The notes beneath the pieces were generated by a model that saw only the letters and a list, made by a program, of their open reading frames with translations, was not told where the DNA came from and did not search any database. A stretch of DNA of 63,810 nucleotides, filler included, from Dimorphilus gyrociliatus (Eukaryota > Animalia > Annelida), in assembly GCA_904063045.1 (NCBI GenBank). It is 4 parts of 4 records of this genome, joined end to end, with 100 filler letters (N's around TTAATTAATTAA, not from the genome) between each part and the next. Parts side by side here need not be neighbours in the genome. Positions count along the whole stretch, not along the records: positions 1 to 30,973 come from CAJFCJ010000213.1; 3 more parts are not named here. One strand, written 5' to 3'. A program made the translations under genes and the position numbers. This document shows positions 1 through 30,973 of this stretch, in pieces; the stretch's first letter is position 1; each line of letters starts with the position of its first letter.

Positions 1-1223
1 TTTTATAGTTTTTTTGTTACACTCATATTGAGTGTAATTTCTCTTATTCTATATCCTTCTAGTATGTTTATAAATACCTTTAGTATTTTTTAAATATCTA
101 TTTTCATGTATTCATAAGATATTCCTACAAGTTTAGTAGTTTCAAATCTACATAATGATTGGTTACACCGAAAAAATATTTGACTTTCGCCCAATTACCT
201 TCCTTTTTTATTGTATTTAATATGTTATGTAGCTTTTAAATTGCTATTGAGGATTTTTATGCATAAAATGATGTTTTTTTTTAAATCTTTTTTGAAAATT
301 TTTAGCATTGTATAGGAGTAAAATTTTTAAAATTAAGGTCTATTCCCAGGGCGGATTGGAGAGCCTTAAAATCCTAATATCCTTCAACCAAATATAAATA
401 CATCATAATAGTGTAGTTTCTGATTTTTAAACAGGTTGATTCAATCTTATTCTGACTGTACAGCACCATAAAAAACGAATACACCACATCTGAAATTTTT
501 ATGAGTTTTATAATAATACTAAATCTACTAATAATATAAGCTTTCACCGACCAATGCTTACTGATTCTTTATCTATAGATTTGATTATTATTAGTATCTC
601 AAATGAGTATATTATTTATTTTCTTCTTTTTTGATATGTTAGGTTTGAGTTTTTATATATTAATCATTCATTTAAATCCTTATATTCTGTTATAGAAGTA
701 TTTAAGAAAGTGTACAAAGTAAATGGTTTCTTTAGAAGATATTGCACTTTAGACACTTTCTCGGTGACTATTTTAATTCACAAATAGTAAAAAGCGATTA
801 TTTAAAAAACTTACTTTTAATAAATATAGGTTTCATTAGATTATCAATTTTAGCTAAGAAAAGTACTTATTCAGCGCTTTTTTTTACTTATTACATTTCT
901 AAGTATCATTGACGGTCGTAATCCAATCAACAATACATTATAAATATAAACAAGAAATACAAATCATAAGAAAAGACCCATTAAAATACTTTAACAAAAA
1001 TTTATGGTAAATTAATATAAGAAATTATAAAAGGAGAATTAAAAATTATCTTACCAATCATTGTAATTTGTTAAATTGATTTTTTTTCTATAAAAATAAT
1101 TAAAATTCAATCTAAGTTCCAAATAGAATAAAATTATTATCAAAATATTTATAAAAGGTGGAAAGAATATTTTTTTTAGAATATATATAAATGGAAAGAG
1201 TCAGTTATGATGTAAACAAATTC

Positions 1224-1251
1224 TATAAATAATTTTTAAATTTCCCCTTTT
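1224..1251 (+). promoter_or_regulatory. AT-rich box plus CCC-type motif immediately upstream of LRR gene 1
   Basis: TATAAATAATTTTTAAATTTCCCCTTTT|ATG; near-identical to the sequence before the ATG at 6560. CCC-like motifs just upstream of ATG are an established microsporidian transcription signal. Confidence 0.6.
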
Positions 1252-3035
1252 ATGAAAAGTTACAGAAGATGTTTGTTCTTGTTCTTAATATTTGTTATAA
1301 AGTTTATAGAATGTACTCAGAACAGCTCAACAACAGAATTAACGTTTAGTGATGTTGAAAAACAGAGCTTAAAAAAAATTTTCAAAAATTTTATTCAGTC
1401 TTATGGAAAAATTAGATATCTTTTTTCTTTTAAATTTGATGAATCTATGACTAACAATATATTCAAATATAATATAAAAGCTTATGGAGCAATTGATAGT
1501 ATTTTAGATGATACAGATAAACTAACTAAACTTAGAGATATAATGGTAGGATTTTCTCAGAAATTAGAACTTAAAGTACGAAGAAACATTTTTAAGATAA
1601 AAGATTATGTTAGTTCAATGTTATATGATTACATGGTAAAAGATAAAGAGTATTCCGTGGAAGAGATAGAAAGCATTATAGAGAGATCTAAATCATACAT
1701 AAATGAAGTCTTAGAGCGTCCTTTAAAGAGTTTAAAGCGTGTTTATATGCTAAAAAAATTACAATCACTGAATTTATCAAATTGTAATCTTAAGGATGAT
1801 AGTTTAGATGGTTTAGATGGTCTTAAGAAACTTAGAATATTAAATGTTTCAGATAATAAAGATATAACCAAAGAAGGATTTGATAAGCTATCTGTTCTTA
1901 AAGATCTCGAATCTATATCTTTGTATAGCTGTAATATTCAAGGGAATGGAGATCTAGAAGTGTTAGGGGAACTACCTAATCTCCAGGAACTCTTTTTCGA
2001 CTCTAGTAAAAGCATTAATAGTAGTAATATTGACTCAATCTGCAAAGCCACTCAGTTGACGAAACTAGCGTTGACCAATTCTAATCTGGAAAGTAATATA
2101 CTAAAAAATAGACTAAAAATTTGAAAAAATTAGAAACTTTAAATCTTTCTTTACTGAAAATGCAGATAAAGAATTACTTGAAGAAATTTTTGATAATCTC
2201 ACGCAACTCAAAGATTTAAATATATCATTTTGTGTTGATATAAACCAGGATCATTTGAATTAATACATAATTTGAATAACTTAGTAAGTTTAAACGTAAA
2301 CATATAAAAAATCTCAATGAAGCAGATTTATCAAATATATTTAATCTGAAAATGCTTGAATCTCTTAATTTATCTTACTGTGAACTAAAAATGGGATCTT
2401 TAAAAGGAATAGAAAAGATAGAACATTTAACAGAACTGTACGTAGGCAACAATGAGATTTCCAAGGATGATACAACTTCTTTATTTAAACTAGAAAAGTT
2501 AGAGATTTTGAAAATGGATGACTGCGAGTTTGAAGAAGGAAGTTTAAAAGGTATAAAAAATTTAAAAAAGTTAAAAGTTTTAAATTTGAATTGGTGCACA
2601 GCCATAGGAAATGAAGAAATGAAAGAAATATCACAACTAAGTAAACTCGAAAAATTAGAAATAATTTCATGTGAACTCAAAGCTGAGGTCTTAAGCAATG
2701 GTTTCAGGGCATTAAATAATCTAAGAGAGCTTAGTATTGGATTCAACCAAAACTTCTCAAATAGTGATATGTCAGAAATTTTCAATTTAAAGAATCTAGA
2801 ACATCTTACAATGCTTGGATGTGATTTAAATGCTAATCATCTTAAAGGAATTCATTCACTTAAGAAGCTAAAAAGTTTAGAAGTATCAGGCAATCAAAGT
2901 CTAACTAAACAAGACTATATAGGAATTAGTAAGCTACCCAACCTATACAGATTATATGTTGATAAATCTTTTTATTCTATAAATGGTATAGAAGACATAA
3001 AAAACGAACTTAAAGAAAGGCGGATTCTTGATTAG
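1252..3035 (+). CDS. Secreted leucine-rich-repeat protein 1 (about 595 aa when reconstructed; interrupted by four 1-bp frameshifts at 2110-2310)
   Basis: ORFs 1252-2124 and 2352-3035 both carry LxxLxLxxN/C repeats. The gap reads as LRR text in shifting frames (KNLKKLETLNLS / TENADKELLEEIFDNLTQLKDLNISFC / IHNLNNLVSLNV / NLNEADLSNIFNLKMLE). Four single-base insertions restore one frame. The N-terminus is hydrophobic and signal-like. Confidence 0.8.
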
Positions 3036-3267
3036 ATACACATATGAACTTAAAAATAGATGCACACGTGTTTTAAGAGTAACCTCTCTCTTTAAAAGAA
3101 ATATACTTCAAAATTATTTAATAAACCGAGGATCTTCGTTTATCTTTTTTATTTCTAATATATAATTCCACTGTATTCATATACTATTTATTCCTATGTT
3201 TTTTTTCTGAGATATTACTTATTTCAATATTTTATGTATATAAAAAATTGATAAAAATTTGTCTTCA

Positions 3268-4070
3268 GGGACCTAAAAAAATGTGGAAACTCCCCTTATC
3301 GGATTAACTGTAGATATAGTAGAGAAGAATTTTTTAAGCTGACGATGAATAACTTATCATTATTTAATTTTTTACTAAAAAACATATTCATTATTGGAGA
3401 AAAACTGTGGAAGGTGAAAAACTCTACGATTTTAATTAAAAACTATGATTTAGAGAAGTATGCTTGGCATTGTAAATGTTTAAAAAAGAGTTCTATTAGA
3501 AGAATGTATTTATTTTTTTGTATAAAATTGCCTTTAGTAAAAATTATAAAGGTAATTTATAGAATAATAAAAACCATATGTGATGAAATACAAGTGAATA
3601 AAGCGGGGGTAACTATAAAACGCTTATTATTATTATATTGAAAAAATATGTTTAAGTATAGGTGATGTTGAAAAAAAAGTATAAATTGCCCCCAAACCGC
3701 AATCACCAAAAGGTTTTATAATGTTAAAAAACATTTTAATTTTTAGATATAAAGCACTTTTTTTATAATAACAAAGACAAGAACTACTTATAAACTAAAA
3801 AAGACTATTTATCGTAACATAAAAAGTAATAATAATAGCTGATAAATAACATCCAATCACTTAATATAAAACACTTGAAAACAAACCATAAAAAATATTT
3901 TGTAGATTCAAAAGATCGTAAAATTAATACAATTAGTATAAAAATGGAAACATCTAAAAAATCTAATATTGAGAAAAAATCTTAGAAATAATATTGTGAT
4001 AAAAAAAAAGGGCATTTCCCGAAGTGATAGAACTATTTAGAATAATTTTTTTCACATTTGTTTAGGACCC
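3268..4070 (+). mobile_element. Degenerate Merlin (IS1016/ISXO2-like) DNA transposon, copy A
   Basis: Imperfect 22-bp TIRs: left GGGACCTAAAAAAATGTGGAAA, right (rev. comp.) GGGTCCTAAACAAATGTGAAAA. Internal remnants YAWHCKCLKKSSIRR (Zn ribbon) and NHKKYFVDSKDRKINT (ISXO2 NH..FV....HT motif) at about 3881-3930. Confidence 0.65.
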
Positions 4071-4499
4071 TTCAATACGACTTTTTACCAAAAAATTTAA
4101 TTATGATCAATCGTAACTAGTGTATGGTTTAGAAAGCATGATAAAAAAATGATTACATCTTTTATTTCAAACTCTTTTATAACAGCCTTATAAGAGTTCC
4201 ATTCAAAAGCGATTATATTAGCTCTTTAAGGAGGTAAGCAAACAGTAAACATTAAAAAAGCGCTTGCTGAAGTACAGCGCAATAACTTTCTTATCACCAG
4301 AAATTGAACCCAAACCACTCACTAAGGATTCGGCCTGTAAAAGCTGAAAAAGAGTCAATTAATTGAATTATTAATCTATTATGAAGATTTCAACCAACTT
4401 GAGATAAAATAAAAAAATTTTATACGTCAAATTTAAATAATATTTAATAAAATTTTTAAAACACTTAACATATTAATAGTTTCTAATTTAAACCCACTA

Positions 4500-5628
4500 A
4501 ATGTTTTCTAGTTTTACTATTGCAGCTATCATTTTTCTGTAAGATGAGCCATATCGAAATGGTACTATTTTATTAAAGAGAGCTTCCGAAATGGAATTCA
4601 TTTATTTGCTAATTCTATTAAACTAAAAAAACATTCTCTATAGAATTTAAAAATGGAGAATATGGTGAAAGCATTTTATGCTCAGATTTTTTCTGATTAA
4701 TTCGTCCTTTAGTGCCCTGTAGTGCAAATGTGATCATTATTTTTAATAAAAACATTTGTTGGAGGTCCTTTTATTCAACTGCTCTAATTTACAGAAAAAT
4801 CCATCTTGTGATATATCATTCCACACTTATTCATAGCAGTAACATAAGATACCCCGCATAAATCCCACTTCATCCATTAAAATCAACCTATTATCATTTA
4901 TGTTATGATTCCATTTTACAAATAAAATCCTCATTTTGTTTTTATTTATCCTAGCATAAGATATATGTATGATTTATTTAAGTATAAAAGAATTAACAGT
5001 AGTATGTAATAAAAACTTACTGTTGTCGTGTCAAATAAAATACATTTTACAAATAAACTACAAGGGGAAAATCCTATTAAATAGTATAAATTTCACAAAA
5101 ATAAATTATTTTAAGCCTTATTTTCATGAATTTGGTCGGGTCAAATAAACTACATGGTAATTTAATAGGATTTCCTTTTTTTATTTAATACAAAATTTTA
5201 ACATAATTTTTTTTTGGAAACACTCCAACAAATAAACTACATAACTAATTTAATAGGGGTTTATAAATAAAAAAAATTTATGGTAAAATTTTGTATTAAA
5301 TAAAAAAATGAAATCCTATTAAATTACCATGTAGTTTATTTGACCCGACCAAATTCATGAAAGCAAGGCTTAAAATAATTTATTTTTGTGAAATTTATAC
5401 TATTTAATAGGATTTTGCCATGTAGTTTATTTGTAAAATGTATTTTATTTGACACGACATTTATTACTTTTTTTTAGTATAATCTTTTTGGACCTGTGAT
5501 CTTTTTATTACTCTAAGGATGTTAGAACTATTTTTTTGATACTTTTCTGCAAGTTTAGTTGCAAGTCCATCCATCCTCATATCTAACACAGATTTCAGTC
5601 TTTGATGTTTGTTCAGATGTTGCGCCAT
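4500..5628 (-). pseudogene. IS630/Tc1-like transposase remnant, split by the 5024-5459 foldback element
   Basis: ATG at 5628 preceded by TTTCCCCCCTTA; N-terminal MAQHLNKHQRLKSVLDMRMDG.... Below the insertion are LILMDEVGF (first catalytic D), VTAMNKCGMIYHK and MLSPYSPFLNSIENV (LPPYSPxLNPIE motif). The lower boundary is approximate. Confidence 0.65.
5024..5459. mobile_element. Foldback/MITE-like palindromic element with about 175-bp inverted arms
   Basis: Left arm TGTCGTGTCAAATAAAATACATTTTACAAATAAACTAC... is the reverse complement of the right arm ...GTAGTTTATTTGTAAAATGTATTTTATTTGACACGACA. The spacer is about 80 bp and CAAATAAACTAC sub-repeats recur internally. Confidence 0.85.
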
Positions 5629-6559
5629 TAAGGGGGGAAATATTAATGTTTTTGAATTCTACTAATACTTTTTTAAGTATTTAGAAAACATGATGCATTT
5701 TTTATTTCCATGTTTTTTATTTTTTCCCTAAATGCAAAATTATTTAATATGAGGAATAACATTAAATTTTGAAATTGTTTATTTTATAAGAATAAATTAT
5801 AATTAAGATATAATTCATTTTAAATCGCTTAAAATTTAGGATTTTAAGGGGAATGCATTTTTTTTGCCGCCATTGTAATTTTGAAAAAGTCTCAAATTTT
5901 ACAGCCTTTCCCTTTAAAATGAAAAATTAAAAATAATCGGAGAACTTTAACTCTTTAGTAATTTAATATAAATTTGTGGTGATTCTCATTTGACTATAAA
6001 AAAATTATTAGTAATGATCTTGAAAAAATAGTCCATCGAAATAAGCTGAAGAAGATATAATCGACAGCAATAAGTTTTGATAATTAAATATTTTAATATT
6101 CAAATATTTTTATAATTAAATTAGTGCAACACAATGATACAACCAATAGTTTAACATACAACAAATATTGAATTCTTTTATTTGAATTTTTTTTGAAAGA
6201 TCTTTTTCCATTCTTCTCTTCAATTTTTCTGTTTTTGAAAAATATCATTGCTTGATCGAAGGTAATGAAATAATTCCAATTTCCCAAAAACCTTCCTCAA
6301 AAGATGTTTGGAATTGTTTCATAATGTAACATAGTTCCTAAACAAGAAAAAGACTCCTTTACAAAAATATAAAGAACTAACCAAATAAAGTAACAAAATT
6401 ATTGATAAACTCAACCTTCAAAGTTTTCTAAAATTCCATTATTAAGCATGTTTTTATACTTAATAGGACTAGTTTAAGTTTTTTTAAAATATTTTATTTG
6501 CTGTTTTATCCAAATATAGTAATGGGAAAGTATAAATAAATTTTATATTTCCCCCTTTT

Positions 6560-8275
6560 ATGAATCTCTACAAAACAAAAACAATAGCGACTTTACTGCT
6601 TAGCTTTTATATCACATTCATTGTTTCAAGTGAAATGATACATAATCAAGTAACAACTCAGCTGAGTGAACAAAGTAGTACTTCATTCAATACAGAACTA
6701 TTCGAAAGTCTGCAAAGTTATATGAAAGATAAAAAGCAACCTTTAGCTGAATTTGATCTCAATAACATTGAAGTTTTAGAATTTGAATTCTCTCGAGAAA
6801 ACTTAGAAGCATCTGCTAAGGCAGATTCTGTTGTCTTAACGGTTAGTGAAAAGAGGTATCCAGTTATAATAGACGAAATAAATAGCAAGTTAATCGTTTT
6901 GAGAACTTCTATTGGCGATGAAGTTTCTATTTTAAACGATATAGACAAACTAACTAATCTTAACACATTAAAACTCAAAGGACATCATATATTCACAGTA
7001 GATGAATTCCAAGCTATTTCAAAATTGGCCCAACTTAAAAGTATAAAAATAAATTATATAGATGAAAATAGCAGTCTAATAAAAAACTTAAATACAATAG
7101 AAAGTTTAGAAAATGTTACGTTACAAATAGACCATGAGATGAAGGATGACATGTTACAATCATTATTACATTTAAAAAATATAAAAAATATTTATGTTGA
7201 AGTTGACAACAAGCAACACAGGTATAGTAAGTACATATCCCTACGAGAAAATCTTACTGAATTCGACGCTTGTGCATTTAATACACTTATTGATAAAAAC
7301 GATACTAAAATTTTAGCGTATCTACCAAACTTAGAAAGTATGGAAATAAGTCAAACTAGTATCTCACCTGGTGCATTAAGTAAAATAGAAATACCAAAAA
7401 GTGTTACACAATTAGATCTGAGTTTCTCTAATGGAATAAATGATGAAGATTATCTCAACTTATCAAATTTAGTGAACTTGACCAACCTAGATTTAAGGAG
7501 ATGTAATCCTAGTGAAAATGGCTTCGGTTATTTCGAAAACAAGCTCAAATATTTGAAGGTGTTGCATTTAGACGGAAATACAAACTTAACACAACGACAT
7601 TTTGAAGTTATAAACACATTTGAAAGTTTAGAAAGACTATCTCTTGAAGGCTGCCTTTTAAAAAAAGATACAATTGTACCAATAAGTAGCCTAAACAAGC
7701 TTACTGATCTAAGCCTGTTTCATAACACAGATTTAGATGTTGAAGATTACAAAACACTTAACAAATTAACCAGTCTAAAATCATTATATTTATTTATGGC
7801 TATACAAAAAGGAGATCTCTTAAAAGAGCTCAAAGACCTCAAAGAACTTCAATCTCTGCATTTGGGATTTTGCAAAAATCTTTCACAAAATGATATTAAT
7901 ACAATGCTGGGCTTTGAAAATCTAGAAGAATTAAATCTACATAGAACTGAGATACCACCACAATCACTTATAGAAATAAGTAGACTAGAAAACTTAAAAA
8001 CATTAACCTTAGCTAATATAAACTTAACTATTGAAGAATTTGATTCATTATCAAAATTAAGAAGTATTAAAAGTCTTGCAATTTTCGCATGTAATATTCC
8101 AAAGAATGTGTTACCAAAACTACGATGTTTAACAAACCTAGAGAAATTCTACTTTGCCACAGAATACAAAATTGGTAATGAAGATTTGGAATACTTAGAA
8201 GAAATGAAATCTTCAAATAAATTAGGAGGAGAAAAAATTGAGTACCTTAGAAAAATAGTAGAAACTTCTAATTAA
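6560..8275 (+). CDS. Secreted leucine-rich-repeat protein 2 (571 aa)
   Basis: Intact ORF; signal-like TIATLLLSFYITFIVSS; many LxxLxxLxLxxN/C repeats; TTTCCCCCTTTT directly before the ATG. Confidence 0.9.
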   Translation: MNLYKTKTIATLLLSFYITFIVSSEMIHNQVTTQLSEQSSTSFNTELFESLQSYMKDKKQPLAEFDLNNIEVLEFEFSRENLEASAKADSVVLTVSEKRYPVIIDEINSKLIVLRTSIGDEVSILNDIDKLTNLNTLKLKGHHIFTVDEFQAISKLAQLKSIKINYIDENSSLIKNLNTIESLENVTLQIDHEMKDDMLQSLLHLKNIKNIYVEVDNKQHRYSKYISLRENLTEFDACAFNTLIDKNDTKILAYLPNLESMEISQTSISPGALSKIEIPKSVTQLDLSFSNGINDEDYLNLSNLVNLTNLDLRRCNPSENGFGYFENKLKYLKVLHLDGNTNLTQRHFEVINTFESLERLSLEGCLLKKDTIVPISSLNKLTDLSLFHNTDLDVEDYKTLNKLTSLKSLYLFMAIQKGDLLKELKDLKELQSLHLGFCKNLSQNDINTMLGFENLEELNLHRTEIPPQSLIEISRLENLKTLTLANINLTIEEFDSLSKLRSIKSLAIFACNIPKNVLPKLRCLTNLEKFYFATEYKIGNEDLEYLEEMKSSNKLGGEKIEYLRKIVETSN

Positions 8276-8711
8276 ACAAAATTCTTATATTATAGTTTAT
8301 TTACATCTAACAATAATTGTCGCACGACGCGCAACCGAGTTCGAGTCTATGTATTGTAAATTTTTTATTTTTTTGAAAGAAATTTTAAAAAAAATTAAAA
8401 TAAATAGAATAGAATATATTTAACAATTTTAGCATATCCTAAACTCACTCTTAATAATAAATACACTTTTCTTGGAGATAAATCAAAAATTATCTTAACA
8501 TTTTGTAAAAGATATAGACAAAGAGTTTACTCAAAATAAATCTAAAAAAAATGCTAATTTTATTCTATAATTTAACAGAAACATGAATGATAAAAGAAAA
8601 TAAGTAGCAACACTTTATTTTTAATTTTTCAGACTTGATTTTTACTCACAATTAATTCGATAGCAGTGTTTAAGTTTTTTATCTTGATGCGATTCATTGA
8701 TTGCATCTCAA

Positions 8712-9440: not shown

Positions 9441-10074
9441 GGGGGGGGAGTGCTTTGGCAAATACCTCTCTTATTATACTTCTTTTTATGGATCAACTAA
9501 AAAAAGACTATTTGCTTTTTTCCAGTTGTGTAAAATATTATACAACCCATGGCTACATTATATGAAAACACTTTAAGACATTTACTGAATGATACCAATG
9601 AAGAAATAATAAGATTCTTCAAGCAAATAGGAATTCTTAAATCTAATTTAAACTGTATGTCATGTTCTGATGTTCTTTCAATGAAAAAATCTACTGCTAA
9701 TTTAGATGGGGATGTATATAGATGTAGCAATAGGCAATGTAGCTTACACCAAAAGATAATATCAATAAGAACAAATCCATTCTTTTCTGTTTCAAAAATT
9801 ACACTAAAGAGTTGGGTTGAAGTTTTATTTAGATGGTCTCAGGGAGATTTGATAGAGAGGGTGATGCGTGATATAAGCATATCACAATCCACTTTAATAA
9901 AAAAATATAAATTAATAAGAAATGAAATTACAAAACTCTTATTTCTAAATCCTGTTAGACTTGAAGGAGAAAATGTAATTTGTCAAGTAGATGAGTGCTT
10001 ATTCTGCCATGAACCAAACTATCATCGTGGAAGAGCTTCTGAAGTGCAAGTATGGGTATTTGGAATTGCATATA

Positions 10075-11556
10075 CAGTGGAGGAAAAAAAAACGGATCAT
10101 TTCTAAAAATAATTAATCCTTCTATTTATGAACATCTTTTAATAAAATATTATTCACTACATATAATCAAATATATTTACCTTTCTCAAGTATTTTTTTA
10201 ATATAATTTTATTGATGTTTAACCAAAAAAATCCAAAAATTTCATGATAAGGTGGAAAAAAAAAACGGATCATTTCATATTTATCCTATTTCCCTCCATA
10301 AATGATGATAATTCTCCTTAATTTGTACCCCTCAATGGGAAAACATATTACACCTGAAGTTTTCGGTCAGATAAAAGCAATGAGAGCTCTAAAAATTCCA
10401 TATAGGGAAATATCAGAAAAACTGAAAATTCCGTATACAACTGTTTATAGACATGGTGTTTTATGTAATAAAACTGACAATCTAATAAGAAAAACAGGTT
10501 CAGGGCGAAAGAGATCACTTTCACAAGAACATTTTAGATTTATTAAATCTAAAATGGATGAAGATAAAAATTGTACGCCCAAAAAGCTATCAAAACTATT
10601 AGATGAAAATCATGGAATAGTTGTTTCCAGAAGGACCATCTCTAACCATCTAAACAAGATAGGATTTCAAAGTGTAGTTCCTTGTTTCAGACCACTTCTA
10701 ACAGCTAGACATAAGATTGCTAGATACGAGATATCTAAAAATTGGTTAACAAAGCCAATAGAGTGGTGGAAGCAAGTTATATTCTCAGATGAAAGCAAGT
10801 TTAATTTATTTGGGAATGATGGTAAGCATAAAAAATGGATTCCTGCTGGGAAAAGGTTAGATCCCCGATATTCAATTAAAACAATCAAATACGGAGGCGG
10901 ATCAGTGATGGTTTGGGGTTGTTTTTCATATCATGGTGTGGGGAAGCTTGTTTTTATAGATGAAATAATGGATGCCTCTTTATATGTAAACATTCTAGCG
11001 CAAAATCTTCAAGCATCAAGTGAAAATATGGGACTCACCAATTACTTCTTTCAACAAGACAATGACCCTAAGCATACATCAAAGCTAGCGAAGGCATATT
11101 TTAGAGAAAATAATATAAAATTAATAAGCTGGGCATCTAACTCGCCCGATTTAAACCCAATTGAAAACCTCTGGGCTATTATTAAGAGGAATTTAAAGGA
11201 TAAAACACCAAAAAACAAGAGAGAGTTAAAAAGGTTAATAATAGAAGAATGGATGAAAATATCCCCAGATTTGTGTAGAAAACTAGTAATAGGAATGCCA
11301 CAAAGAGCTAGACAATGTTATCTAACAAAGGGAGACCATATTAATAAATAAATATGAAATGATCCGTTTTTTTTTCCACCTTATCATGAAATTTTTGGAT
11401 TTTTTTGGTTAAACATCAATAAAATTATATTAAAAAAATACTTGAGAAAGGTAAATATATTTGATTATATGTAGTGAATAATATTTTATTAAAAGATGTT
11501 CATAAATAGAAGGATTAATTATTTTTAGAAATGATCCGTTTTTTTTTCCTCCACTG
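10075..11556 (+). mobile_element. Complete Tc1-family DNA transposon with long IR/DR terminal repeats and TA target duplication
   Basis: TA at 10073-74 and 11557-58. TIRs 10075-10284 and 11348-11556 are essentially perfect (CAGTGGAGGAAAAAAAAACGGATCATTTC...), and each carries the GTGGAAAAAAAAAACGGATCATTTC repeat at both ends. Confidence 0.95.
10335..11351 (+). CDS. Tc1 DD34E transposase (338 aa from the likely true start MGKHITPE)
   Basis: VIFSDESKF, FFQQDNDPKH and SPDLNPIENLW, with 34 residues between the second D and the E; N-terminal HTH and GSGRKR linker. The ATG at 10335 is preceded by CCCCTCA; the ORF-track start at 10302 is probably too early. Confidence 0.95.
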   Translation: MGKHITPEVFGQIKAMRALKIPYREISEKLKIPYTTVYRHGVLCNKTDNLIRKTGSGRKRSLSQEHFRFIKSKMDEDKNCTPKKLSKLLDENHGIVVSRRTISNHLNKIGFQSVVPCFRPLLTARHKIARYEISKNWLTKPIEWWKQVIFSDESKFNLFGNDGKHKKWIPAGKRLDPRYSIKTIKYGGGSVMVWGCFSYHGVGKLVFIDEIMDASLYVNILAQNLQASSENMGLTNYFFQQDNDPKHTSKLAKAYFRENNIKLISWASNSPDLNPIENLWAIIKRNLKDKTPKNKRELKRLIIEEWMKISPDLCRKLVIGMPQRARQCYLTKGDHINK

Positions 11557-12025
11557 TATAAACTATGTTCATGCTAGATGTTTTTTAAAGGTAGTGCCTA
11601 ACAGAAGAGCAACACCCTTTTACCAATAATCAACGACGTGTGTTTACCTCATACTATAATATTTTCTGATGAATGGGCTGCATATCAGAGAATAAGTGAA
11701 GGCAGTTATATACATGACACTGTCAACCACACTTTGGTGTTTGTAGATCCTAAATCAGAAGTACATACACAGAATATTGAGTCATGCTTGGACTCAATAA
11801 AAAGAAAATTTAAATATATGAAAGGTGTCTATAAAATTCTCCTACAATCTTATTTAAATGAGTTTATGTGGAGACAAAACTCAACAGAAGATATTTTGAA
11901 AGATTGTTATTTTTAATATCAAATTATGTTATTTAAAGTTATTTTAATTAAAAAAAAAGGTAAAAATTGCTTTCAGGGCCCCCCTTAAAATTGGATATTA
12001 GAAAGAAATAAAAATATAATTAAAT

Positions 12026-13290: not shown

Positions 13291-13313
13291 ATATTAAGAA
13301 TATGACTAATGCT

Positions 13314-17900: not shown

Positions 17901-19526
17901 CTTGCTATTTTAATTAGTTCTTTTTTGTAGCCTCCATATGAAATTATAAACATGTAGTATCATATACTTTACTATTTTCATAAAGATTGTCAATGATTTC
18001 CTTCATTTTATTAGCACAAACATAGTTTAGTAGATGATATTCTCAAATTATACTTTTCTTTTATTAATACACGAGGTCAACAGATATCTTTTTTCAACTC
18101 TATTTCGTTCAGAATAAATAGCCGAATTATCGTAAAATAATACCTTGATTTCTTGATAAACTTTTTTTACATTCACATGGAATAACTTCACTAGCGACTA
18201 TGAGATGATGTTGTTTTTCTTATCTAATTTGAAATAACTGGAGTAATGGCTATGGATGATGCGCAAAATACTGAAAAATAGCTTCATTCAATTACCTAAT
18301 ATTTTGATGTACCTAATTTTTACGATTGAGATAAAAGAATCAGGTTAAAAAAATCGAACTGATTTTTATGAGAGTATCCCCCTCCTCACAACCTACCATA
18401 TACAAAACTTACCTGACCAAGCTGAAAAAATAAGGGAGAAAAAAATTAAAAAAAACGGTTTGTGGTAATTTAGTAGGATTTTTGTGTAATTCATTCATCA
18501 TAGCAATATTATATTTAAAAAAAGTCTAGTTTCGTTAAATAGGATTTGATTAATGTAAAATTTTATGAGTAAAAAAAGTAGCTAAGAGCATTCAATCTGT
18601 ATTTCATTTATAGTCATCATAAAAGAATTGAATAGAAAGAAACTACATTTCAAATTATTAAAAAGTATAAAATATTATCTTGTTATACAATAATATACAA
18701 TAAAAAAAATCAAGCAGTTTTTCTGTAATAAAACATAGTATAGAAAGATAAATATAACTTAAATTCGAGGGGAAAGAGTAGAATTCACGACTATCTTTGA
18801 AGCTTTTATGGGGAAGTACTATATTTTATGCTATATATTAGTTATCAATTAACCTCTTATGTTTCATAAATATAACATGACTTTAAGCAGCAACGGTATA
18901 CAAACACGAGTCTCAGACTTATAAATAATTAATAAAATATAAAAAATAGATTATTGCTTCTTGAATAAGCTATTTACAAATTTAAAAATAGGCAAGTTAC
19001 GGAGAAAAATGTAAAACTTCCCTAAATGTAAGAATTGACATACAATGTCTTTAATCGAGAAATAGATCTTTTAAATAAGGAATATAAATTATCTTACTGG
19101 TATGTATGACAAAAGGTGAAAAAGTGTTATAACTCAAAATTAATTAACCAAGTGTAATTGTGAGGATTTAGCAAAAAATATATATGAATATAGTACGATA
19201 AGCAGGATAGGGTAAATATTGTTAGGATAATAAACAAAAGTATTTTTTAATTATTATCTTTTCAGAATTTAAGTATTGAAAGATATAATTACAATATCTG
19301 AAATAGTTATAAACCATTTATTTATAAACTTTTTGAAAGCTTTACACTTTATTTTATAAATAAACACCTTTTGTGATAGATAAAAGAGACTTATCTTTAC
19401 TTAATAAGATAGGTTTTAAAAATTATAATTTATTGTTTTTTATAGAAAATACTTTCAGTTAAAATAAGTTATAAAAAAGGCTTATTTATTAATTTTTAAA
19501 TACAAATAATATTTTTTTAATTTTAA

Positions 19527-19795
19527 TATTAAATTCTAAATTAGTAAAAAAATTAATTTTGAAAATATTTTTTTTGATTTTTGATCTTAATATCAAATTC
19601 TAAGTAAGTGAAACAGTTGAACTTTTAAAACATAAAAATATATTATAAAAATTATATAAAACATTTTTTTATCTTTATATTAAATTCTAAATAAGTAAAA
19701 AAGTAGAAATTTCAAAATAAATATAAAAACTTAATTTTATATTTTTTTTGATTTTTGATCTTTAATATCAAATTCCAAATAAGTGAAAAAGATAA
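19527..19795. repeat. Imperfect AT-rich tandem repeat upstream of the RhoGAP gene
   Basis: ATAT(T/C)AAATTC(T/C)AAATAAGT-like unit recurs four times; TTTTTTTGATTTTTGATCTT(T)AATATCAAATTC occurs twice. Confidence 0.5.
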
Positions 19796-19898
19796 CTTTT
19801 TTGAATTATATTTTTGTTTAATTTTCAAAATTAATTAAAAATTTGAAAAATTTTGTTTCAGGTTTTATCATAAAAAGATTTTCAAAATTGATCCCTTA

Positions 19899-21421
19899 AT
19901 GACTTTCAAAATAAAAGAATTAATAAACTTTTACGAAAAGCTTTCTGCTGAGAGTAGCAGTGCATCATTTGTCAGTGGCTCCACTGACAATGATAATCAC
20001 TGTATTAGAGAGAATGAGATGGTTGATGGTTTGAAAGGACAAGTATCTAAAGACAAAATGATAGTTGCTCTATTTCAAGCTGCTTTATAAGTAATGGTGA
20101 AGAGATCTCTTTAGAAGTTAAAGAATATTGTAAACAAAAAGAACACAACTCTAGTTTAAATAACCTTTGTACTGCCAAAGAAGCTGATCTTCCGAATGGA
20201 TCAATGCAACCCTCCCAAAGGATTCCAAAGGTAATACAGAAAACGTCGATGATAAATCTAGTCCAATACAACTCAAGTGATAACGATTCAAAAACAAATG
20301 ATATTAAAGGTTCTAACAAAAAGTTTGATATTAATAAACACGCTTTATATAAGATCATAGAAGAGGATAACGTTACAGAGGAAAATCTAGAAAAAGCTAA
20401 ATACAGGAAATTTCTTGTATCTGATATACATGATAAAAAAATAATTAGTTACATTAGTAAGTATGACACTGAGCCATCACTATATGGCAAAAAGTGGTAT
20501 TCTAACGACAAGGACATGGGCTATAAAGCCGACCAGAAGATACTGTCCGACTCATATGACTTGAAAATACAATATCGCTTCTATACGGATGTTGTGCTTA
20601 CAGAAAAATTAGATGAGGCAAATCTTGAAAGCCCTAGTAAGCTGACAATACAAAGAAAAGAAAATTTTTAAATATTCACAACATATGTTAAAAATTACTT
20701 AAACAACAATGTAAAACTCCCTCTAAAGAAGAAAGCTTAAATTGCATATGATAAGTTTATGCATGGACAAAGTTTGCAAGATGATGACTTTTATGCATCA
20801 CCACAAATTTACGAGCTCATTAATTATATCAAAAAAAATTGCAAAGTAATTAACATGTTTCGAGTGGAAGGCGAGAAAAATGTATATGAGGCTCTTGCAA
20901 GAAGAATAGAAGATAAGCCAGCAGAAGAAATAGATTATAACAAATATGACATGTTCGATTTATGTTCTGCCTTAAAATACTACTTCAGAGAGGTTAAAGG
21001 AGGTATATTGACTAGAGAAGTAACAGAATCTTTGTTTCACGCTTTTATGAATAATAAACAAGGCGATCTTAAGGAACTTTCAAAATACTTAAGAGGTTCT
21101 CTCTACGGTGAGAGAAGAAAGTTCTTAGCAGCAATTTTTAGTTTATATAGTGAAGTAGATAAATACAAATCTTACAATATGATGGGAATAGATAACTTGT
21201 TGATATGTTCTTTCCCTAGTTTTTTTGCTGATGTCCCGATTATACCAAGGAAAATTGAAATAATTACAGTTATGAGAATACTCGTGGAAAGTTTAATAGT
21301 GGAACTGGAAGCAGAATACCCAGCCTCATTAATAAAAGAAACAGAAGAATTTTTCGACAGAGAAGATGTTGTTAATAATAGAGTAAAACCTGGGTACTTA
21401 AAATACATATGTTATAATTAA
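19899..21421 (+). pseudogene. RhoGAP-domain gene, interrupted by one frameshift near 20050-20090 and two in-frame TAA codons
   Basis: The C-terminal ORF has NMFRVEG (arginine finger), DLCSALKYYFRE and NMMGIDNLLIC..P. ORFs 20204-20671 and 20759-21421 are in the same frame, separated by ENF*IF...KKA*IAYDKF. The ATG at 19899 is preceded by CCCTTA. Confidence 0.75.
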
Positions 21422-21789
21422 ATAGATTGTATTAAAATATTTTTATAATTAATTATTACCATTCATTAAATTATTAAATCAATGTGACATATTTAAATAT
21501 AAATTTACCCCTATGTTTTATAAAGATAGCATTATATAAAAATTATTTTAAAAATTATTTAAAACTTTATATACAACTGTGGAAAAAAATGCACACTCCT
21601 TAAAATCTTAAATTTAAGTGACTTAAAATAAACGCTATGTAGCTATAATTTATTCTTATAAAATGAAGAATTTTTAAATACAATATTAGGTGCATGCACA
21701 ATATACCATCCTTTTGAAAAAATAAAAAAATTTAAAAAAATAAAAAAAAATAAAAAAAACTTTAAACTTTTATTAAAATTAATATTTCA

Positions 21790-22680
21790 CTAAACCTATT
21801 GTTTTTTTTAGTTTTATAAATCCATAAAAACTCAGTTAGATGTAAATATTGGTCACGTCTACTAGCACCATTTTTTCTTCGGAGATGATATTTCGATTGA
21901 GAGAAAAATCCTTCTATTGTTTGTGTCTAAAAAGAAGGATCTCCTGGATTTACAAAGTGATAAGTATGGTTGACGATGTCATGTCCATAATTTATATTAT
22001 ATAATGTGTTGATTCTACTGAATACAGCACTATAAGCAGCCCATTCATCAGTTATTACTCTTGTTCCAGGTTCTATATTTTCTATAATTATTCTTCTTAT
22101 AGTAGATGCATTTTCGTTTTTTACTGGTACAATAAATGCCTTCTTTGAGCCTATTTCGATTCCTGCAGCCTAACATCCCCTATTGGTTATTCTCCTTCTA
22201 TTATATTTCCTCTTGAAAAATAAACACCCTTCTAATTCCCGTATTATTAATGTTATTTCTCCTAACTTTGGTTATTTATTATTATATGATTAGCATGGAA
22301 CTCGTTGATAAAACAAGCCCACTTTGATGTTGAATTTCGAGAAACATTTATATCAAAGACAAAAACACATATTTTAATAATTTCATAAAGTTTAAATATA
22401 ATTTTAATTATATTGAAAGTTTCATTCTATAACTTAAGAAAAAAGCTTCCATTTCTTATACTACTTCTTTTTCCACAAGTACATTTTCACCGAAACTTAT
22501 CAATATCTACATTAGATTTGACACAACTCATGTCATTGCTGCAGGTAGAACATTTACTTTTGCTTTTATTAAGCCTATCAAGACTAGGAATTCGTTAGTC
22601 TATTCTTCATTATAAAGTCTATTATATAAATACGGCCTCTGTTTCAGCCACCTAATTGTGTCGTTATTTAAAATCTGGCA
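21790..22680 (-). mobile_element. Merlin (ISXO2-like) transposase pseudogene, copy E (absent from the ORF track)
   Basis: Minus-strand translation gives KCSTCSNDM..DKFR*KCTCGKRSSIRNGSFF, FKRKYNRRR, IEPGTRVITDEWAAY, IVNHTYHFVNP, TQTIEGFFS and HLTEFLW. Confidence 0.85.
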
Positions 22681-23514
22681 CTTATTTACTATATTTTTAC
22701 TTACAATTCTGATTTTGATAGGAAGTTTTGAAAAGGATGTTGTAATTCCAAAGGATAGTATAGTGTGCGTGCACCAAAATAATAACGGAATGAAAAAAAG
22801 CTTTTTTTTAAAGAAACCTACGATATATATTGTTTTTATTATAATCATAACCTTTATCGAATAATTTATGATCAAATTCGTAATGTTTTCTATTTTTTCC
22901 AGTCTAATGTTTCTTCGGCACTTTTTTAAGGTAGAACAACTTCATAGATGTTTATGATATTAAAACATTCTTTTATATTTGAATTATTGAAAAGTCATTA
23001 TACCATCGATAAAAAACATTTAAAATACTGTTTATATATGTTTCTGTTATGGAAAAATCATCTTAAAGTGCTTTTTTTATGTTTTAATACATTATTCTTA
23101 TATTATAAAAAGTATAGTTTTTGTGATAATTTATATTTTTAGAAAAGAGAACTTTTATATATTTTTTAATTTCATTGAGTTTCCTAGTTTTAAACGGACA
23201 AGTAAATTCTTCTTGATTATAACATTGTCTAAAAAATATAAATTTTATTTACAATAAAATCAGATCACGGCTGTATTAAAAGTCCTAGATAACACGAAAT
23301 ATAAAAATTTTATATTGAAAATACTAATTGGAAAGTTATAAATAAATATAACTCTATATAAAAACACTTTTTATCCAATTATAAAAAAGATATAACAACT
23401 TTGAGTAATGAAGACTTGCAGATGTCTTTTAAAATTAAATATGAAATGTTATTAGGAAAATACAAAATATATTATAAAAGAATTAAGAATAACTTTAATC
23501 AAGTATAAATTTAC

Positions 23515-25650
23515 TTATTGAAAAATAGATAAGACATCTGACCCACTAGTATCTATGATATCTACCTCATCTGAATATACCTGTCGAATTCCGCTATTTT
23601 GAAGCATAGAATATAACTCGTCGAAATCACAACCTATATTATACCGAAAATTAAAACCTAGTGATCTCAAGCGAGGAAAACTTGTCACAACCACTAAAAA
23701 GTCTTCTTTACATAACATGTAATTACAATGTACTATTAGTAATTCCAAGCTTTTAAGGTCTTTTATGAACTTTAGAGAACCTGCTAATAAAGAGCATGAC
23801 TTAAAACTTAACTTTTTTAAACTTGTTAAGCTATTAATTGCTTTTAAACAGTCTGTTCTTAAATTTATACCATTTCCGAAAGACAATACTTCTAAATTTT
23901 TAAGTTTTTGAATTTCAGTTATTTTTAGGTCGTAAAAGTCTAATCCTAACAATTTGAGTGACTTGAGATTACTTAATCTACAAATACAACTAAACTCTTG
24001 TTCAGTTAATTTAATAGAATCAAAAACACCATCACATGTTAAAAATAAACTTTCCAAATTGGGCATATTGTCCAAGTTTTCTAATGCACCCTTTTCGATA
24101 TCACAATGAGACAAATCAAGTAATTTTATACTTTTAATCTTTGAAATGCTATTTAAGTCTTCTTTAGTCAAAGAAACATTATAAGCTAAATGCAATTTTT
24201 CAATCTTACATTTACTATTAAAATAGGAAAATACACTAGGATATGTTATACACCTTTTTTGGTTGAGTATTTTTAAACTATTAAGGTTTGTTACAAAATA
24301 CATTGTTTTATAACTTATTAAATTAAGTGATAAATCAAGGTATTCTAGTTTAGGAAAACCACCTACATCTTCTAATATATTCTCTCCTAATTCACAATTT
24401 GATAAAATTAGTTTGGTTAAATTTGGTAATTGACTTATTCTTTTTATGTCTTCTTTTGTTATTTCTTTATTATTAGAAAGATTTAAAATTTCCGTTTTTT
24501 TTAATTTACTTATATCGTTGATTGTTTCCTTTTTGAGTAGACAAAAATTTAAATTTAATTTTCTCAACCCAGTAATCATACAAATTTGTTGGAAAGTTTT
24601 TTCGTCTATATTTAGAATATAAGAAAGGTCTAGAGTTTCTAAATTGGATAACCTATTTATATTTTTAAGTATATTTCCATTTATATAACAGCCAGACAAG
24701 TTAAGTTCTTCTAAATTATGTAATTCAATAATTTGTTCAAGTTTCTGTTGATGATCAGTAAGCCAAGTATTAGATAAATTTAATTTTCTCATTTTAGTAA
24801 GGATTCCTATATCACTACAAAACAAATACCTTAAGAAGCAATTGTGAATATCAAGAATTTCTAATTTCTTTAATTCAAAAATTCGAATTAAATCAATCCT
24901 ATTAATTAGTTCAACCTCAACCATGTAAAGTCTTTTAAGATTTACTAACTTGCTTATACAACTTAAAACACCAGGATCAAAAATACAGTGGTTTATATTT
25001 AACTCTTGTAAACTACTTAGTGAGGTAATTGAATTAAACAACCCTCTACTTATAATTCCATTGTATGAAACATTCAATTTTTCTAAAAACTGGAAATTAT
25101 CAATTTTTTTAAAAACATCTTCTTTTAAATAACATCCTGTTATATTAAGTTCTTTAAGTTGCTTAATAAGGCATATTGATGTAAAATCTTCTTCAGTCAA
25201 TCTTATATTATAAGACAAATCTAGTTTTTGAAGATTACTTAAAGAAGTAATATTTTTTAGTGAATTGCTAGGAAGTTTACAATCATATAAATTAAGTTTC
25301 TTGAGATTTTTTAGCTCTAAAATGGAACTTATGTCGTTTTCATTTAACCATGAATTGTAAGAGAGATCCAGTTCTTCTAAGCTTTGGAGATTACGAATTC
25401 CATTAAAAAGTCCTTCTTTTAGATTACCATCTATTAACTTTAGTTTTACTAAGTTTGGTAACCTAAAAATTATTTTTAAATGCTTTTTACACTCTTCTAA
25501 GTGTTCATCTTTCTGATTGTTCACTTCTTGATTGAGTAATTTAGATTTACTTTCTTGAAAAGATGTACTTCCTAATTGGTCTTCATATGAAATAATTTGA
25601 ACAATATATAAACTGAATGTAATTTTTATAAAATCAGAACTAAAAATCAT
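23515..25650 (-). CDS. Secreted leucine-rich-repeat protein 3 (711 aa)
   Basis: Intact ORF; hydrophobic N-terminus FIKITFSLYIVQIIS; more than 20 LRRs in 25+24-aa doublets; CCC directly before the ATG. Confidence 0.9.
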   Translation of the reverse strand: MIFSSDFIKITFSLYIVQIISYEDQLGSTSFQESKSKLLNQEVNNQKDEHLEECKKHLKIIFRLPNLVKLKLIDGNLKEGLFNGIRNLQSLEELDLSYNSWLNENDISSILELKNLKKLNLYDCKLPSNSLKNITSLSNLQKLDLSYNIRLTEEDFTSICLIKQLKELNITGCYLKEDVFKKIDNFQFLEKLNVSYNGIISRGLFNSITSLSSLQELNINHCIFDPGVLSCISKLVNLKRLYMVEVELINRIDLIRIFELKKLEILDIHNCFLRYLFCSDIGILTKMRKLNLSNTWLTDHQQKLEQIIELHNLEELNLSGCYINGNILKNINRLSNLETLDLSYILNIDEKTFQQICMITGLRKLNLNFCLLKKETINDISKLKKTEILNLSNNKEITKEDIKRISQLPNLTKLILSNCELGENILEDVGGFPKLEYLDLSLNLISYKTMYFVTNLNSLKILNQKRCITYPSVFSYFNSKCKIEKLHLAYNVSLTKEDLNSISKIKSIKLLDLSHCDIEKGALENLDNMPNLESLFLTCDGVFDSIKLTEQEFSCICRLSNLKSLKLLGLDFYDLKITEIQKLKNLEVLSFGNGINLRTDCLKAINSLTSLKKLSFKSCSLLAGSLKFIKDLKSLELLIVHCNYMLCKEDFLVVVTSFPRLRSLGFNFRYNIGCDFDELYSMLQNSGIRQVYSDEVDIIDTSGSDVLSIFQ

Positions 25651-25871
25651 GGGTTAGCTAATTAATACAGTAAAATAATCAATTTTTGATTGATTTAAAA
25701 TAAAAACCTTACAAATTGATTTCCATTATAATTTTTTAAGAAATAAAAATTTCCTAAAAAAGCTTAGAAGATTAATATTAAAGTGATAAAATTTTGATTA
25801 AAAAATCCTAAAAAGAATAAATGAATAGATTTTTTATATTTATTATAAAACTGCTTATAATTAGTATTCTA

Positions 25872-26939: not shown

Positions 26940-27146
26940 TCACAAAAATAGATACAATTAGATTTATGAGACAAAATAACGAATGTTTTGTTTTCTTATT
27001 CTATTTTTATGTATTTTTTAAAGTTTTACTGAATTACGTTTAAATGAATTAAAATATGTATTAATAATCTGCAATAGAATTTATTTTACACATTCAACAC
27101 ATCAATTCCTAAAAATACAATAAATTTGTATATTATTATAATTTAT

Positions 27147-28398: not shown

Positions 28399-28740
28399 AA
28401 ATTAAAATAGAGTCCTATTCTTATATAGATGAGGTACCAAAAGAAAAAAATTTGATATAATTTATGCTTTTGACTTTCAAAGCTATGTTCCTTATTTAGA
28501 TTATTCAGAAGGGATGTTATTAAGCAATTCAGGTAACTTTGAAAAAAAAGAAAAATCAACTGAGGTAGGAAATAATCCATATAAGTCAATAATAGACTTT
28601 ATAAAAGCTAGCAATTATATTAAGTCAGTAAAGGAAGGATTATCGCTTTCTCACGTACCACCGATATAATATCCCATACTCCTTATGTTATTGGATCAAA
28701 ATTCAACCAACTTGCAGTTTTTACAGATAAAGACTATAAA

Positions 28741-29135
28741 ATGGATAAAATCGATATTTTTTATATAAATAGAAACATTTGTGTTCTTACTCTTAGTCTG
28801 AAACTCTTTCTAGATCACCCAAAAAAAAATTATTAATAAATGAATCTATTATAAGAAAGGAAGATAAGCAGAGTTTAGAAAAGTTTCTTTGCAATTACAG
28901 CATTAATTATGAATTTATTAAAAACGAACAAGTGCGTAAATTAGCTGAGCGAAAGTGTATTCTTGTACTAGACCTTGTAACGCTTAAGAATGAAGAAGAA
29001 CAAAGTAAATTTTTAGAAAATTATAAACATTATAATAATTTACATGTTGTTAAAACAATATGGGATTCTTTTTCTTCGAATGGACTAAGATTACGAATAC
29101 AGCCCCCATTAGAGCTAAAAGACGAAGAAAGCTAG
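28741..29135 (+). pseudogene. Small orphan gene with a frameshift at an A9 run
   Basis: MDKIDIFYINRNICVL... continues after a shift as LLINESIIRKEDK...KNEQVRKLAERK, which is in frame with ORF 28932-29135. Confidence 0.35.
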
Positions 29136-29756
29136 TCAACTAGTAAGTTAAAATGGAATTTAGCTAAATGGTAGTTTTATTAAACTAATACCACTTATAT
29201 TATGTTTATTTGGAGTTTTCAATTAAGCTAATTTAATATTATCAATAGATATTAGATTTAAATTTTAACCTTATTTTCTATTATAAAATGATAATTTATC
29301 TCTTTTTATAATTTTATATAAAAACCAAATACAATATTTCCAAGTTTTAAAATCCTCTGATTTTTTTAAAAAACTCAAACATTACTTTTAAGTAGAAATA
29401 TTAGGGTTTATGGTATTATAAGGGATTTTTGGATTTTTTAATAAAATCTAAATTCCTTAAATAAAAAAAAAATTCTCGAGAACAAAATTAAGAGATTAAT
29501 TAATCTTTTAACTTTATCATGCTTCCTAAACCAAGTTTTTTGTAAAATATATATAAATTGTAAATCTTTACATTTCGTATATTTTTTAAGTTCTCATTTT
29601 AAAATACTCTGAAACTATTTGATGTCTTGGATGTGTATTTCTTTATTTTGAGGGAGACAAAATTATACGAGTGATTGAGAGTTTCATGCTGATAGATAAG
29701 AATCATCCCTAAACCCAGCTTGATAATATGCCCAATAACCTGTTACAGAGCTATCA

Positions 29757-30973
29757 GGGGTAAAATGGACAATTTTAAATTTTTTTTTAATTTTTTTTTT
29801 CAATTTTTTTTAGTTTTTTTAAAATTAAAAGAACATTGCATTTAAATATTACCTTTATTGATTTAACGTACTATTTAGATTTTCCCACATTTTACGATAG
29901 AAATTACGAAAAACATTTTGGTCATTCTCATTAAAAGAATCAATGGCCTCAATTATATAACTTTTTAAGATAGAACTATTTGTTGCCACGGGTCTTTTAC
30001 TACAAACTTTTGATTTTGATACTGAAAATACATTCTCAATGGGATTAAAGTCTGGGAATATGGTGAAAGAAACTTAAATGAAATATTATTTCTTCTAAGA
30101 ATATTTCTGACTGTTTCGGTTCTGTGTATAGAAGCATTATCCATTACCAAAAGAGTGTCATTTGTAAGGCTTTGGCGATTCACGTAATTTTGTATAAATT
30201 CACCAAACTGATTTGAGCTAAATGATCCATCAACTATAGTATAATCATTATACCATTTAGGCTAAACATTGCACAAAGTGATATATTTCTTCCTCTAGAT
30301 GGATTAACAGATACCAATGCATCTGTATTAGCAGGGAATATCCATAACTATTTGATACATGTAAATTAAATCCCGATTCATCAAAGAAAACTATTTGCTT
30401 ATGCCTATTGAGCATCATTTCAGATGCATATTGTGCTCTTTTCTCAGTATTTGACTGTTCAAATGTCACTGACGCTCTTCTTTTCAACCTTTTTCGGGTC
30501 AATCCTGCTTTTTGTCAAGATACTCATTTTAGTTTGGGATAGAGGAATATTTTCACTGTTTAAAATCTTCTTGCTCCCTTTTGGTAAGACCATTATCTCT
30601 GCTAAACACTTCAATTATATTTGCTTTTAAAGTAGTGTTATCCCTCCGAGCTGGTCCTTTTTTGCTTACTAGTTTGGAAAAGGTGGGCTCTGACTCTGTT
30701 TCAAGAAATTTTATGATTTCATAAATTCTTGACCTTGATACATTGGTTGTACTGCTAATTGTAGGCACTTTCATGGTATCTTTTAGTCTTTTAATTTGCT
30801 CAAAAGGTTTTCATCAAGCTTTTGGTATTTTCTTGCTCGGTTGTTATCTTCTCTCATTTTTTAGGGCTAAAAAATTGATGGCCAATCGTAGAAAAAAAAC
30901 CTATCTAGTTGGTAATACCTTAGAAATAAAAAATATTAAAAAAAAAAAAATTTCAAAATTGTCCATTTTATTT
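29757..30973 (-). mobile_element. IS630/Tc1-mariner element with a broken transposase and terminal inverted repeats
   Basis: TIR TAAAATGGACAATTTT(A/G)AA at about 29761 and its reverse complement ending at about 30970. Fragments are HTH (TISSTTNVSRSRIYEII), IVFFDESGFN, LVMDNASIH and FLSPYS. Confidence 0.8.

Follow-up and report, generated by a model that had tools for sequence, protein, structure and literature searches.

A scaffold of probable microsporidian origin within the genome assembly of the annelid Dimorphilus gyrociliatus

The window analysed here, a stretch of 63,810 nucleotides, is made up of parts of several records of the Dimorphilus gyrociliatus genome, and its positions 1–30973 are contig C213 of a 77.9-Mb, 349-contig assembly. 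This scaffold raises the question of whose genome it belongs to, since the first-pass annotation had proposed that the assembly contains an unrecognised microsporidian that infected the sequenced invertebrate. We conclude that C213 very probably comes from the nuclear genome of a microsporidian, an intracellular fungal parasite, whose DNA was assembled along with that of the animal in which it was present. Small-subunit (SSU) ribosomal RNA (rRNA) genes show a microsporidian in the assembly, and C213 is tied to it by shared gene and repeat families, tetranucleotide composition and the relatives of the encoded proteins. That host assemblies can conceal microsporidian contigs is already known.

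Ribosomal RNA genes and the contigs related to C213

The assembly was searched with a universal SSU pattern, and the loci found were then analysed with Rfam. Ten SSU sites were located, eight of them in host arrays (C5, C164 and C223) and two on C184 and C222. The three host genes that were scanned (two from C5, one from C223) scored 1722–1723 bits against RF01960, while those on C184 and C222 matched RF02542 with 1178 bits over the full model (1–1311 of 1311) and a length of 1353 nt. The search for microsporidian SSU rRNA that the first-pass annotation had put forward as a check was therefore positive, with full-length genes on both contigs. The SSU gene of C184 occupies 30498–31850 on the minus strand, and a short SSU of prokaryotic size is a mark of Microsporidia. 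Each of these two SSU genes is followed after ~5 nt by a large-subunit (LSU) gene of ~2.65 kb (C184:27845–30493), which aligns from model position 1. No separate 5.8S call was obtained from Rfam at either locus, where clan competition hides overlapping 5.8S matches. Fused, shortened ribosomal DNA (rDNA) is typical of Microsporidia, and the arrangement on C184 and C222 points indirectly to the same pattern, with the 5.8S fused to a short LSU.

C213 is tied to these contigs by its gene and repeat families. About 40 contigs, C184 among them and none below C79, bear members of its leucine-rich repeat (LRR), Merlin, Tc1 and RhoGAP families (at least 65 matches for the family of LRR gene 3, at least 42 for Merlin copy B, about 25 for Tc1, and 6 contigs for RhoGAP); none of the four was found on C1–C78, which include the sampled megabase host contigs. 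On C184 there are at least four LRR genes of the C213 family and a Merlin copy, besides a Tc1 transposase; the LRR proteins and this transposase are encoded within a few kb of the rDNA. The composition of the contigs follows the same division: the tetranucleotide correlation of C213 is 0.991–0.994 with C184, C79, C277, C233 and C200 and 0.943–0.959 with the host contigs C1, C7 and C10, and after normalization for GC content the values are 0.67–0.71 for parasite-type contigs versus 0.15–0.18 for host contigs.

Glycyl-tRNA synthetase (GlyRS) is encoded twice in the assembly, once as an intronless open reading frame (ORF) of 618 aa on C277, behind AACCCC + ATG, and once as an exon-split gene on the host contig C19, the two being 42% identical. 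The contig with the intronless GlyRS also bears a near-identical copy of the Tc1 element of C213.

Identities between C213 proteins and their named relatives do not exceed 47%, the sole closer sequence being an environmental RhoGAP at 60%. Microsporidia account for most of the nearest named relatives of its RhoGAP and Tc1 proteins. In an exhaustive HMMER search, the closest relative of the RhoGAP (60% identity) lies on an AT-rich JGI environmental contig (3300019033, Ga0193037_10044102), on which a small neighbouring gene on the other strand has AAACCCTAAA + ATG at its start; the environmental sample may thus have contained a related microsporidian. The next matches, at 30–35% identity, include ELQ75255 and ELQ76131, both of which we take to be from Trachipleistophora hominis, and KAF7683043 of Astathelohania contejeani, and another relative sits on compact intronless contigs that bear the microsporidian Actin_micro family. 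The ESM Atlas confirmed the family membership of the RhoGAP and GlyRS proteins and gave no taxonomic information. For the Tc1 transposase, 13 relatives are named in the 120 matches listed, and five of these are microsporidian: Dictyocoela muelleri (twice), D. roeselum, Enteropsectra breve and Cucumispora dikerogammari. Among the matches listed, these are the most identical named ones (39–47%), and the remaining named relatives are from the catfish Hemibagrus guttatus and one bacterial IS630.

A protein annotated as a RhoGAP of the ant 'Nylanderia fulva' (XP_029166590.1) also stands among the closest RhoGAP relatives, beside the microsporidian proteins. Its locus, SGBU01000351.1:68083–85216, belongs to a 184-kb contig and has 34% GC over 17 kb; a CCC box was found at none of the three genes neighbouring it. 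SGBU01000351.1 could be a parasite contig within the ant assembly, and may then be a candidate parallel to the case described here.

Two further observations concern the rDNA. Downstream of the LSU, at C184:21000–27800 and C222:~800–7800, lies a non-LTR (non-long terminal repeat) retrotransposon with apurinic/apyrimidinic (AP)-endonuclease and RVT_1 ORFs. Its GC content is 45–50%, compared with ~25% for the genome, and it may be a long interspersed nuclear element (LINE) that is rDNA-associated or recently acquired. In the host, the rDNA spacing is 9.1 kb on C5 and C164 versus 10.76 kb on C223; two scanned SSU genes, one each from C5 and C223, have the same Rfam score (1722.4 bits), and the difference reflects either another spacer length between arrays or an insertion.

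Start signals, genes and transposons of C213

Genes of the scaffold were mapped as ORFs and then scanned with Pfam, and tRNAs were sought via ARAGORN and Rfam. With a GC content of ~25% along its whole length, C213 contains three LRR genes, one small RhoGAP, one intact Tc1 element, a tRNA-Ala and several orphan ORFs, together with two decayed Tc1/mariner copies and two Merlin copies (Table 1). Its genes can be read without any GT-AG intron, and uninterrupted ORFs reach 571, 711, 384 and 349 aa, which bears out the earlier description of the genes in this part of the window as intronless.

Table 1. Features mapped on scaffold C213, in positions of the window
Feature	Position	Strand	Description
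LRR gene 1	1252–3035	+	Pfam LRR_4/LRR_14; behind AAATTTCCCCTTTT + ATG
Decayed Tc1/mariner-type transposase	4600–5628	-	ORF fragments with helix-turn-helix (HTH), DE.GF and SPYSPFLNSIEN motifs
LRR gene 2, intact, 571 aa	6560–8275	+	LRR_14, 1.2e-15; signal-like N-terminus; behind AAATTTTATATTTCCCCCTTTT + ATG
Merlin copy A, 5' half	9549–10070	+	185-aa ORF behind ACAACCC + ATG; blastp to related C277 ORF
Tc1-type transposon, complete	10071–11560	+	Inserted in Merlin copy A
Merlin copy A, 3' half	11561–11958	+	ORF 11638–11916; IS1595-type DDE domain positions 76–153 (PF12762, 3.9e-12)
Merlin copy B	11959–12558	-	First 598 bp of 987-bp element; PF12762, 4.9e-14; cut by gap
Assembly gap (N)	12559–13290	.	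Expected to contain ~390 bp of Merlin copy B
tRNA-Ala (AGC)	13313–13387	+	tRNA call
Orphan ORF, 384 aa	14746–15900	+	Without Pfam family
Repeated unit, 2.9 kb	18656–21562	+	Further copies on C233 (88%; L032:3100–6039) and C200 (91%; L033:5248–8013)
ORF upstream of RhoGAP	20204–20671	+	In RhoGAP frame, two TAA codons between
RhoGAP, 220 aa	20759–21421	+	Pfam RhoGAP PF00620, 4e-20
LRR gene 3, intact, 711 aa	23515–25650	-	Pfam LRR; signal-like N-terminus; behind CTAACCC + ATG
Decayed Tc1/mariner copy	29761–30970	-	40-nt terminal repeats; DDE_3 fragments (PF13358, 1.4e-6)
CCC site, LRR gene	1252	+	AAATTTCCCCTTTT then ATG
CCC site, decayed Tc1/mariner transposase	5628	-	TTTCCCCCCTTA then ATG
CCC site, LRR gene	6560	+	ATATTTCCCCCTTTT then ATG; also read as AAATTTTATATTTCCCCCTTTT then ATG
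CCC site, Merlin copy A	9549	+	ACAACCC then ATG
CCC site, Met internal to Tc1 transposase ORF	10335	+	TACCCCTCA then ATG
CCC site, 63-codon ORF	19899	+	GATCCCTTA then ATG
CCC site, LRR gene	25650	-	CTAACCC then ATG

A CCC start signal was scored when it lay within 15 bases before an ATG, and its frequency was compared with the background by a binomial test. On C213 it precedes 5 of the 14 ORFs of at least 100 aa, versus 44 of all 955 ATGs (4.6%; p = 3e-4). When C213 and its sister contigs are taken together, the signal stands before 10 of 24 ORFs of at least 200 aa against a background of 5.9%; on host contigs it was found before none of five ORFs. A compact microsporidian contig, used as a positive control, gave 6 of 12 against a background of 11%, a rate to which that of C213 is comparable. 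The full AAATTT...CCCC...ATG arrangement is present at two LRR genes. Published CCC/AAATTT start signals are those of Encephalitozoon, Nosema, Anncaliia, Antonospora and Enterocytozoon (PMC2803860), in agreement with the earlier claim that CCC-like signals before the ATG are characteristic of microsporidia.

The first-pass annotation had listed seven places at which CCC directly precedes an ATG, and reading of the upstream bases found the signal at all seven, with some details that differ from the earlier account. The start at 5628 heads the decayed Tc1/mariner transposase, and that at 19899 opens an ORF of only 63 codons, out of frame with the RhoGAP. The LRR gene that begins at 1252 is broken by several frameshifts within 1252–3035, and the ATG at 10335 is an internal methionine of the Tc1 transposase, whose longest ORF begins at 10302 and is preceded by TTTCCCTCCATAA.

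The putative signal peptides of the LRR proteins were judged by eye from hydrophobic N-termini, that of gene 1 being MKSYRRCLFLFLIFVIKFIEC. The frameshifts of gene 1 fall between 2124 and 2352, as seen in a three-frame reading, and this gene is likely a pseudogene or carries assembly indels. Across the assembly the family consists of dozens of intronless ORFs, pseudogene-like members among them, and its best named match is to Hamiltosporidium tvaerminnensis, at 29% identity. An LRR family of 97 ORFs is known from Spraguea lophii, with a signal peptide in 37 of the 52 complete ones, and according to the same study the LRR expansions of different microsporidia are mutually unrelated (PMC3749934); the earlier statement that expanded families of LRR proteins with signal peptides occur in microsporidia agrees with that study. 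The family described here is like that of S. lophii in its dozens of intronless ORFs and in the hydrophobic N-termini of the three C213 genes. It differs in its best named match, which is from Hamiltosporidium. By inference, the LRR proteins of C213 may be secreted or surface proteins that meet the host, a role in host interaction having been proposed for those of S. lophii (PMC3749934).

The RhoGAP gene lies in a repeated unit of 2.9 kb, in which a run of four 59-nt repeats (19504–19801) stands upstream of the RhoGAP ORFs. In the C233 paralogue, the same start codon opens a single ORF of 377 aa that extends into the RhoGAP domain; more distant paralogues are found on C181, C299 and C201. Because the copies differ in the positions of their stop codons, the family appears to be partly pseudogenised or to be carried on an unrecognised mobile element. 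Reassignment of the stop codon, considered for the two in-frame TAA codons ahead of the RhoGAP, was rejected, as seven of the nine main ORFs end in TAA; TGA and TAG close the two pieces of the broken LRR gene 1. Likewise rejected was an intron between 20671 and 20759, as the single ORF of C233 runs through that stretch into the RhoGAP domain, and C233 and C200 were rejected as alleles of C213, their similarity being confined to the 2.9-kb unit.

The complete Tc1 element, which splits Merlin copy A, is bounded by terminal inverted repeats (TIRs) of ~214 nt that are 100% complementary (10071–10284 and 11348–11560), with TACAGTG termini and TA target duplications (TA/TACAGTG...CACTGTA/TA). Its transposase is an intact ORF of 349 aa (10302–11351) with DDE_3 (1.6e-15) and HTH_Tnp_Tc3_2 (1.5e-11) domains. 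The element thus combines the DDE_3 and HTH domains, the TIRs and the TA duplication of the Tc1/mariner group. A second copy, 99.7–100% identical, is present on C277, and the near-identity of the copies together with the perfect terminal repeats indicates recent transposition. The motifs of the decayed transposase at 4600–5628 were read directly from the sequence. This gene is interrupted at 5007–5476 by a palindromic, MITE-like (miniature inverted-repeat transposable element-like) insert of 470 bp, with 151-nt arms that are 96% complementary and outer 64-nt arms that are 84% complementary. The palindrome, which is near-perfect, looks like a MITE or a foldback element.

Merlin copy B belongs to an element with 38-nt terminal repeats (GGTAAAAATTGCTTTCAGGGCCCCC...), of which a full copy of 987 bp, with 38-nt TIRs and an 8-bp duplication (GAAAATTT), is found on C179. 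When this full copy is used, the IS1595/ISXO2-type DDE domain, the TIRs and the 8–9 bp duplication of Merlin/IS1595-like elements are all present. The Merlin families of the assembly comprise dozens of copies at 67–98% identity. Merlin elements occur in large-genome microsporidia (PMC4202319), in line with the earlier description of them as typical of that group; in Anncaliia algerae the transposase coding sequence averages 880 bp, compared with an element of ~987 bp here (PMC4202319).

The scaffold is interrupted by one assembly gap, across which no reading frame can be traced. Its left edge is base 598 of the 987-bp Merlin copy, so that the gap should hold ~390 bp of Merlin, and the interrupted repeat would plausibly account for it. 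At the right edge, 22 bp ahead of the tRNA-Ala, the sequence is unique and matches no Merlin copy. The tetranucleotide correlation between the two sides is 0.99 (0.83 when GC-normalised), and members of the LRR and Tc1 families are present on both. Since composition and gene families agree on both sides, the microsporidian identification stands for each of them separately.

Directly downstream of an LRR gene, positions 8320–8360 resemble the 3' half of a tRNA, with the T-arm GAGTTCGAGTC, and are 70% identical to the tRNA-Ala region at its 3' end. No tRNA was called there by ARAGORN or by Rfam, and the stretch is probably a tRNA remnant. In sequencing archives, 31-mers near-identical to positions 19800–25700 were found in runs of three organisms and of a marine sediment metagenome (five studies); the run richest in these words holds 36% of them, and small shares are present in two other organisms and the metagenome.

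Alternative origins of the scaffold

Several observations weigh against the assignment of C213 to a microsporidian. The rRNA genes lie on C184 and C222 and none on C213, which also lacks any gene specific to the phylum, and the scaffold C184 contains gaps; the link between C213 and the rDNA contigs is drawn from shared repeat families, composition and protein relatives. The LRR matches, with 29% identity, are low-complexity-like, and of the four named RhoGAP matches one is annotated as an ant protein. Transposons have been exchanged between microsporidia and animals (PMC4202319), and because of such movement Tc1 and Merlin matches taken by themselves are weak taxonomic evidence. For the polar-tube protein PTP2, the spore-wall family MICSWaP, the actin-like Actin_micro and the nucleotide transporter TLC (NTT), no match was found anywhere in the assembly, the control genomes being silent too. 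This negative result weighs little, because the controls gave no match either, the families are very divergent and the parasite contigs are fragmentary.

Some of these points would also fit an origin of C213 from another AT-rich, intron-poor eukaryote (an amoebozoan, apicomplexan, ciliate or rozellid), with the rDNA contigs coming from a different organism. C213 carries neither an rRNA gene nor a phylum-specific protein, the search of the assembly for hallmark proteins of Microsporidia found none, and LRR expansions occur outside Microsporidia, expanded families being known from Entamoeba and Trichomonas as well. We nevertheless consider such an origin very unlikely. The rDNA scaffold C184 shares the LRR, Tc1 and Merlin families and the tetranucleotide profile of C213, the CCC/AAATTT start signal is the microsporidian one, and most of the RhoGAP relatives nearest to it that are named come from microsporidia. 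Standard stop codons terminate all ORFs, which excludes a ciliate-type genetic code. It is likewise very unlikely that C213 is host DNA, namely an AT-rich and transposon-rich region that possibly includes genes transferred from a microsporidian. The four gene and repeat families of C213 were not found on C1–C78, megabase host contigs among them, the GC-normalised tetranucleotide correlation with the host is only 0.15–0.18, and the C213 genes are intronless with CCC-box starts, whereas the GlyRS of the host is exon-split. These differences stand against the facts that the host genome is itself AT-rich (30–34% GC), that one named Tc1 match group is from a catfish, and that Tc1 and Merlin elements occur in animals and have been exchanged with microsporidia (PMC4202319).

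If C213 is of microsporidian origin, as we conclude, the parasite would have been present in the sequenced invertebrate and its DNA assembled together with that of the host, and we infer a true intracellular infection of the animal as opposed to carry-over from its surface or gut. The region would be repeat-rich as in large-genome microsporidia, with Tc1/mariner and Merlin elements of which some were recently active, and between these transposons would lie members of an expanded LRR family whose signal-like N-termini suggest secreted or surface proteins meeting the host. A CCC-like box, in some cases with AAATTT ahead of it, stands a few bases before the gene starts and would be a promoter and start signal that gives a very short leader, as in E. 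cuniculi.

Comparison with known microsporidia and implications

C213 resembles the genomes of Anncaliia algerae, Hamiltosporidium, Nosema bombycis and Dictyocoela in its low gene density and its many Merlin and Tc1/mariner families, and it shares intronless genes and CCC-like start signals with large-genome microsporidia (PMC2803860). It differs in that no close relative was found among sequenced genomes, its best named protein identities being 29–47%, and its GC content of 25% is at the low end. As in other assemblies with a hidden parasite, the contigs can be recognised by their rDNA, their composition and the duplication of single-copy genes; here about 40 mostly repeat-rich contigs are present, and the parasite genome seems to be represented only in fragmentary form. 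The large-genome type of microsporidian is a known one, and the lineage may be new. We suggest, with a confidence that falls somewhat short of even, that the parasite belongs to a microsporidian lineage without a sequenced genome, possibly an undescribed species, that it has a large, AT-rich and transposon-laden genome, that its host is a small-genome invertebrate not reported as a host, and that its ~40 contigs stand unflagged in the host assembly.

C213 reveals no new kind of biology, and its uses are in pointing to a parasite not sampled before and in the decontamination of the host assembly. In that public assembly, about 40 contigs are of parasite and not of animal origin, and as long as they are unflagged they would supply comparative analyses with false 'host' genes (the LRR genes, the RhoGAPs and a second GlyRS) and false signals of horizontal transfer. 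For parasitologists, they offer an initial view of a microsporidian that has probably not been sampled before and of a host-parasite association; the Tc1 and Merlin elements seen in it are active, and its LRR family is large and of a type that has been proposed to serve in host interaction.

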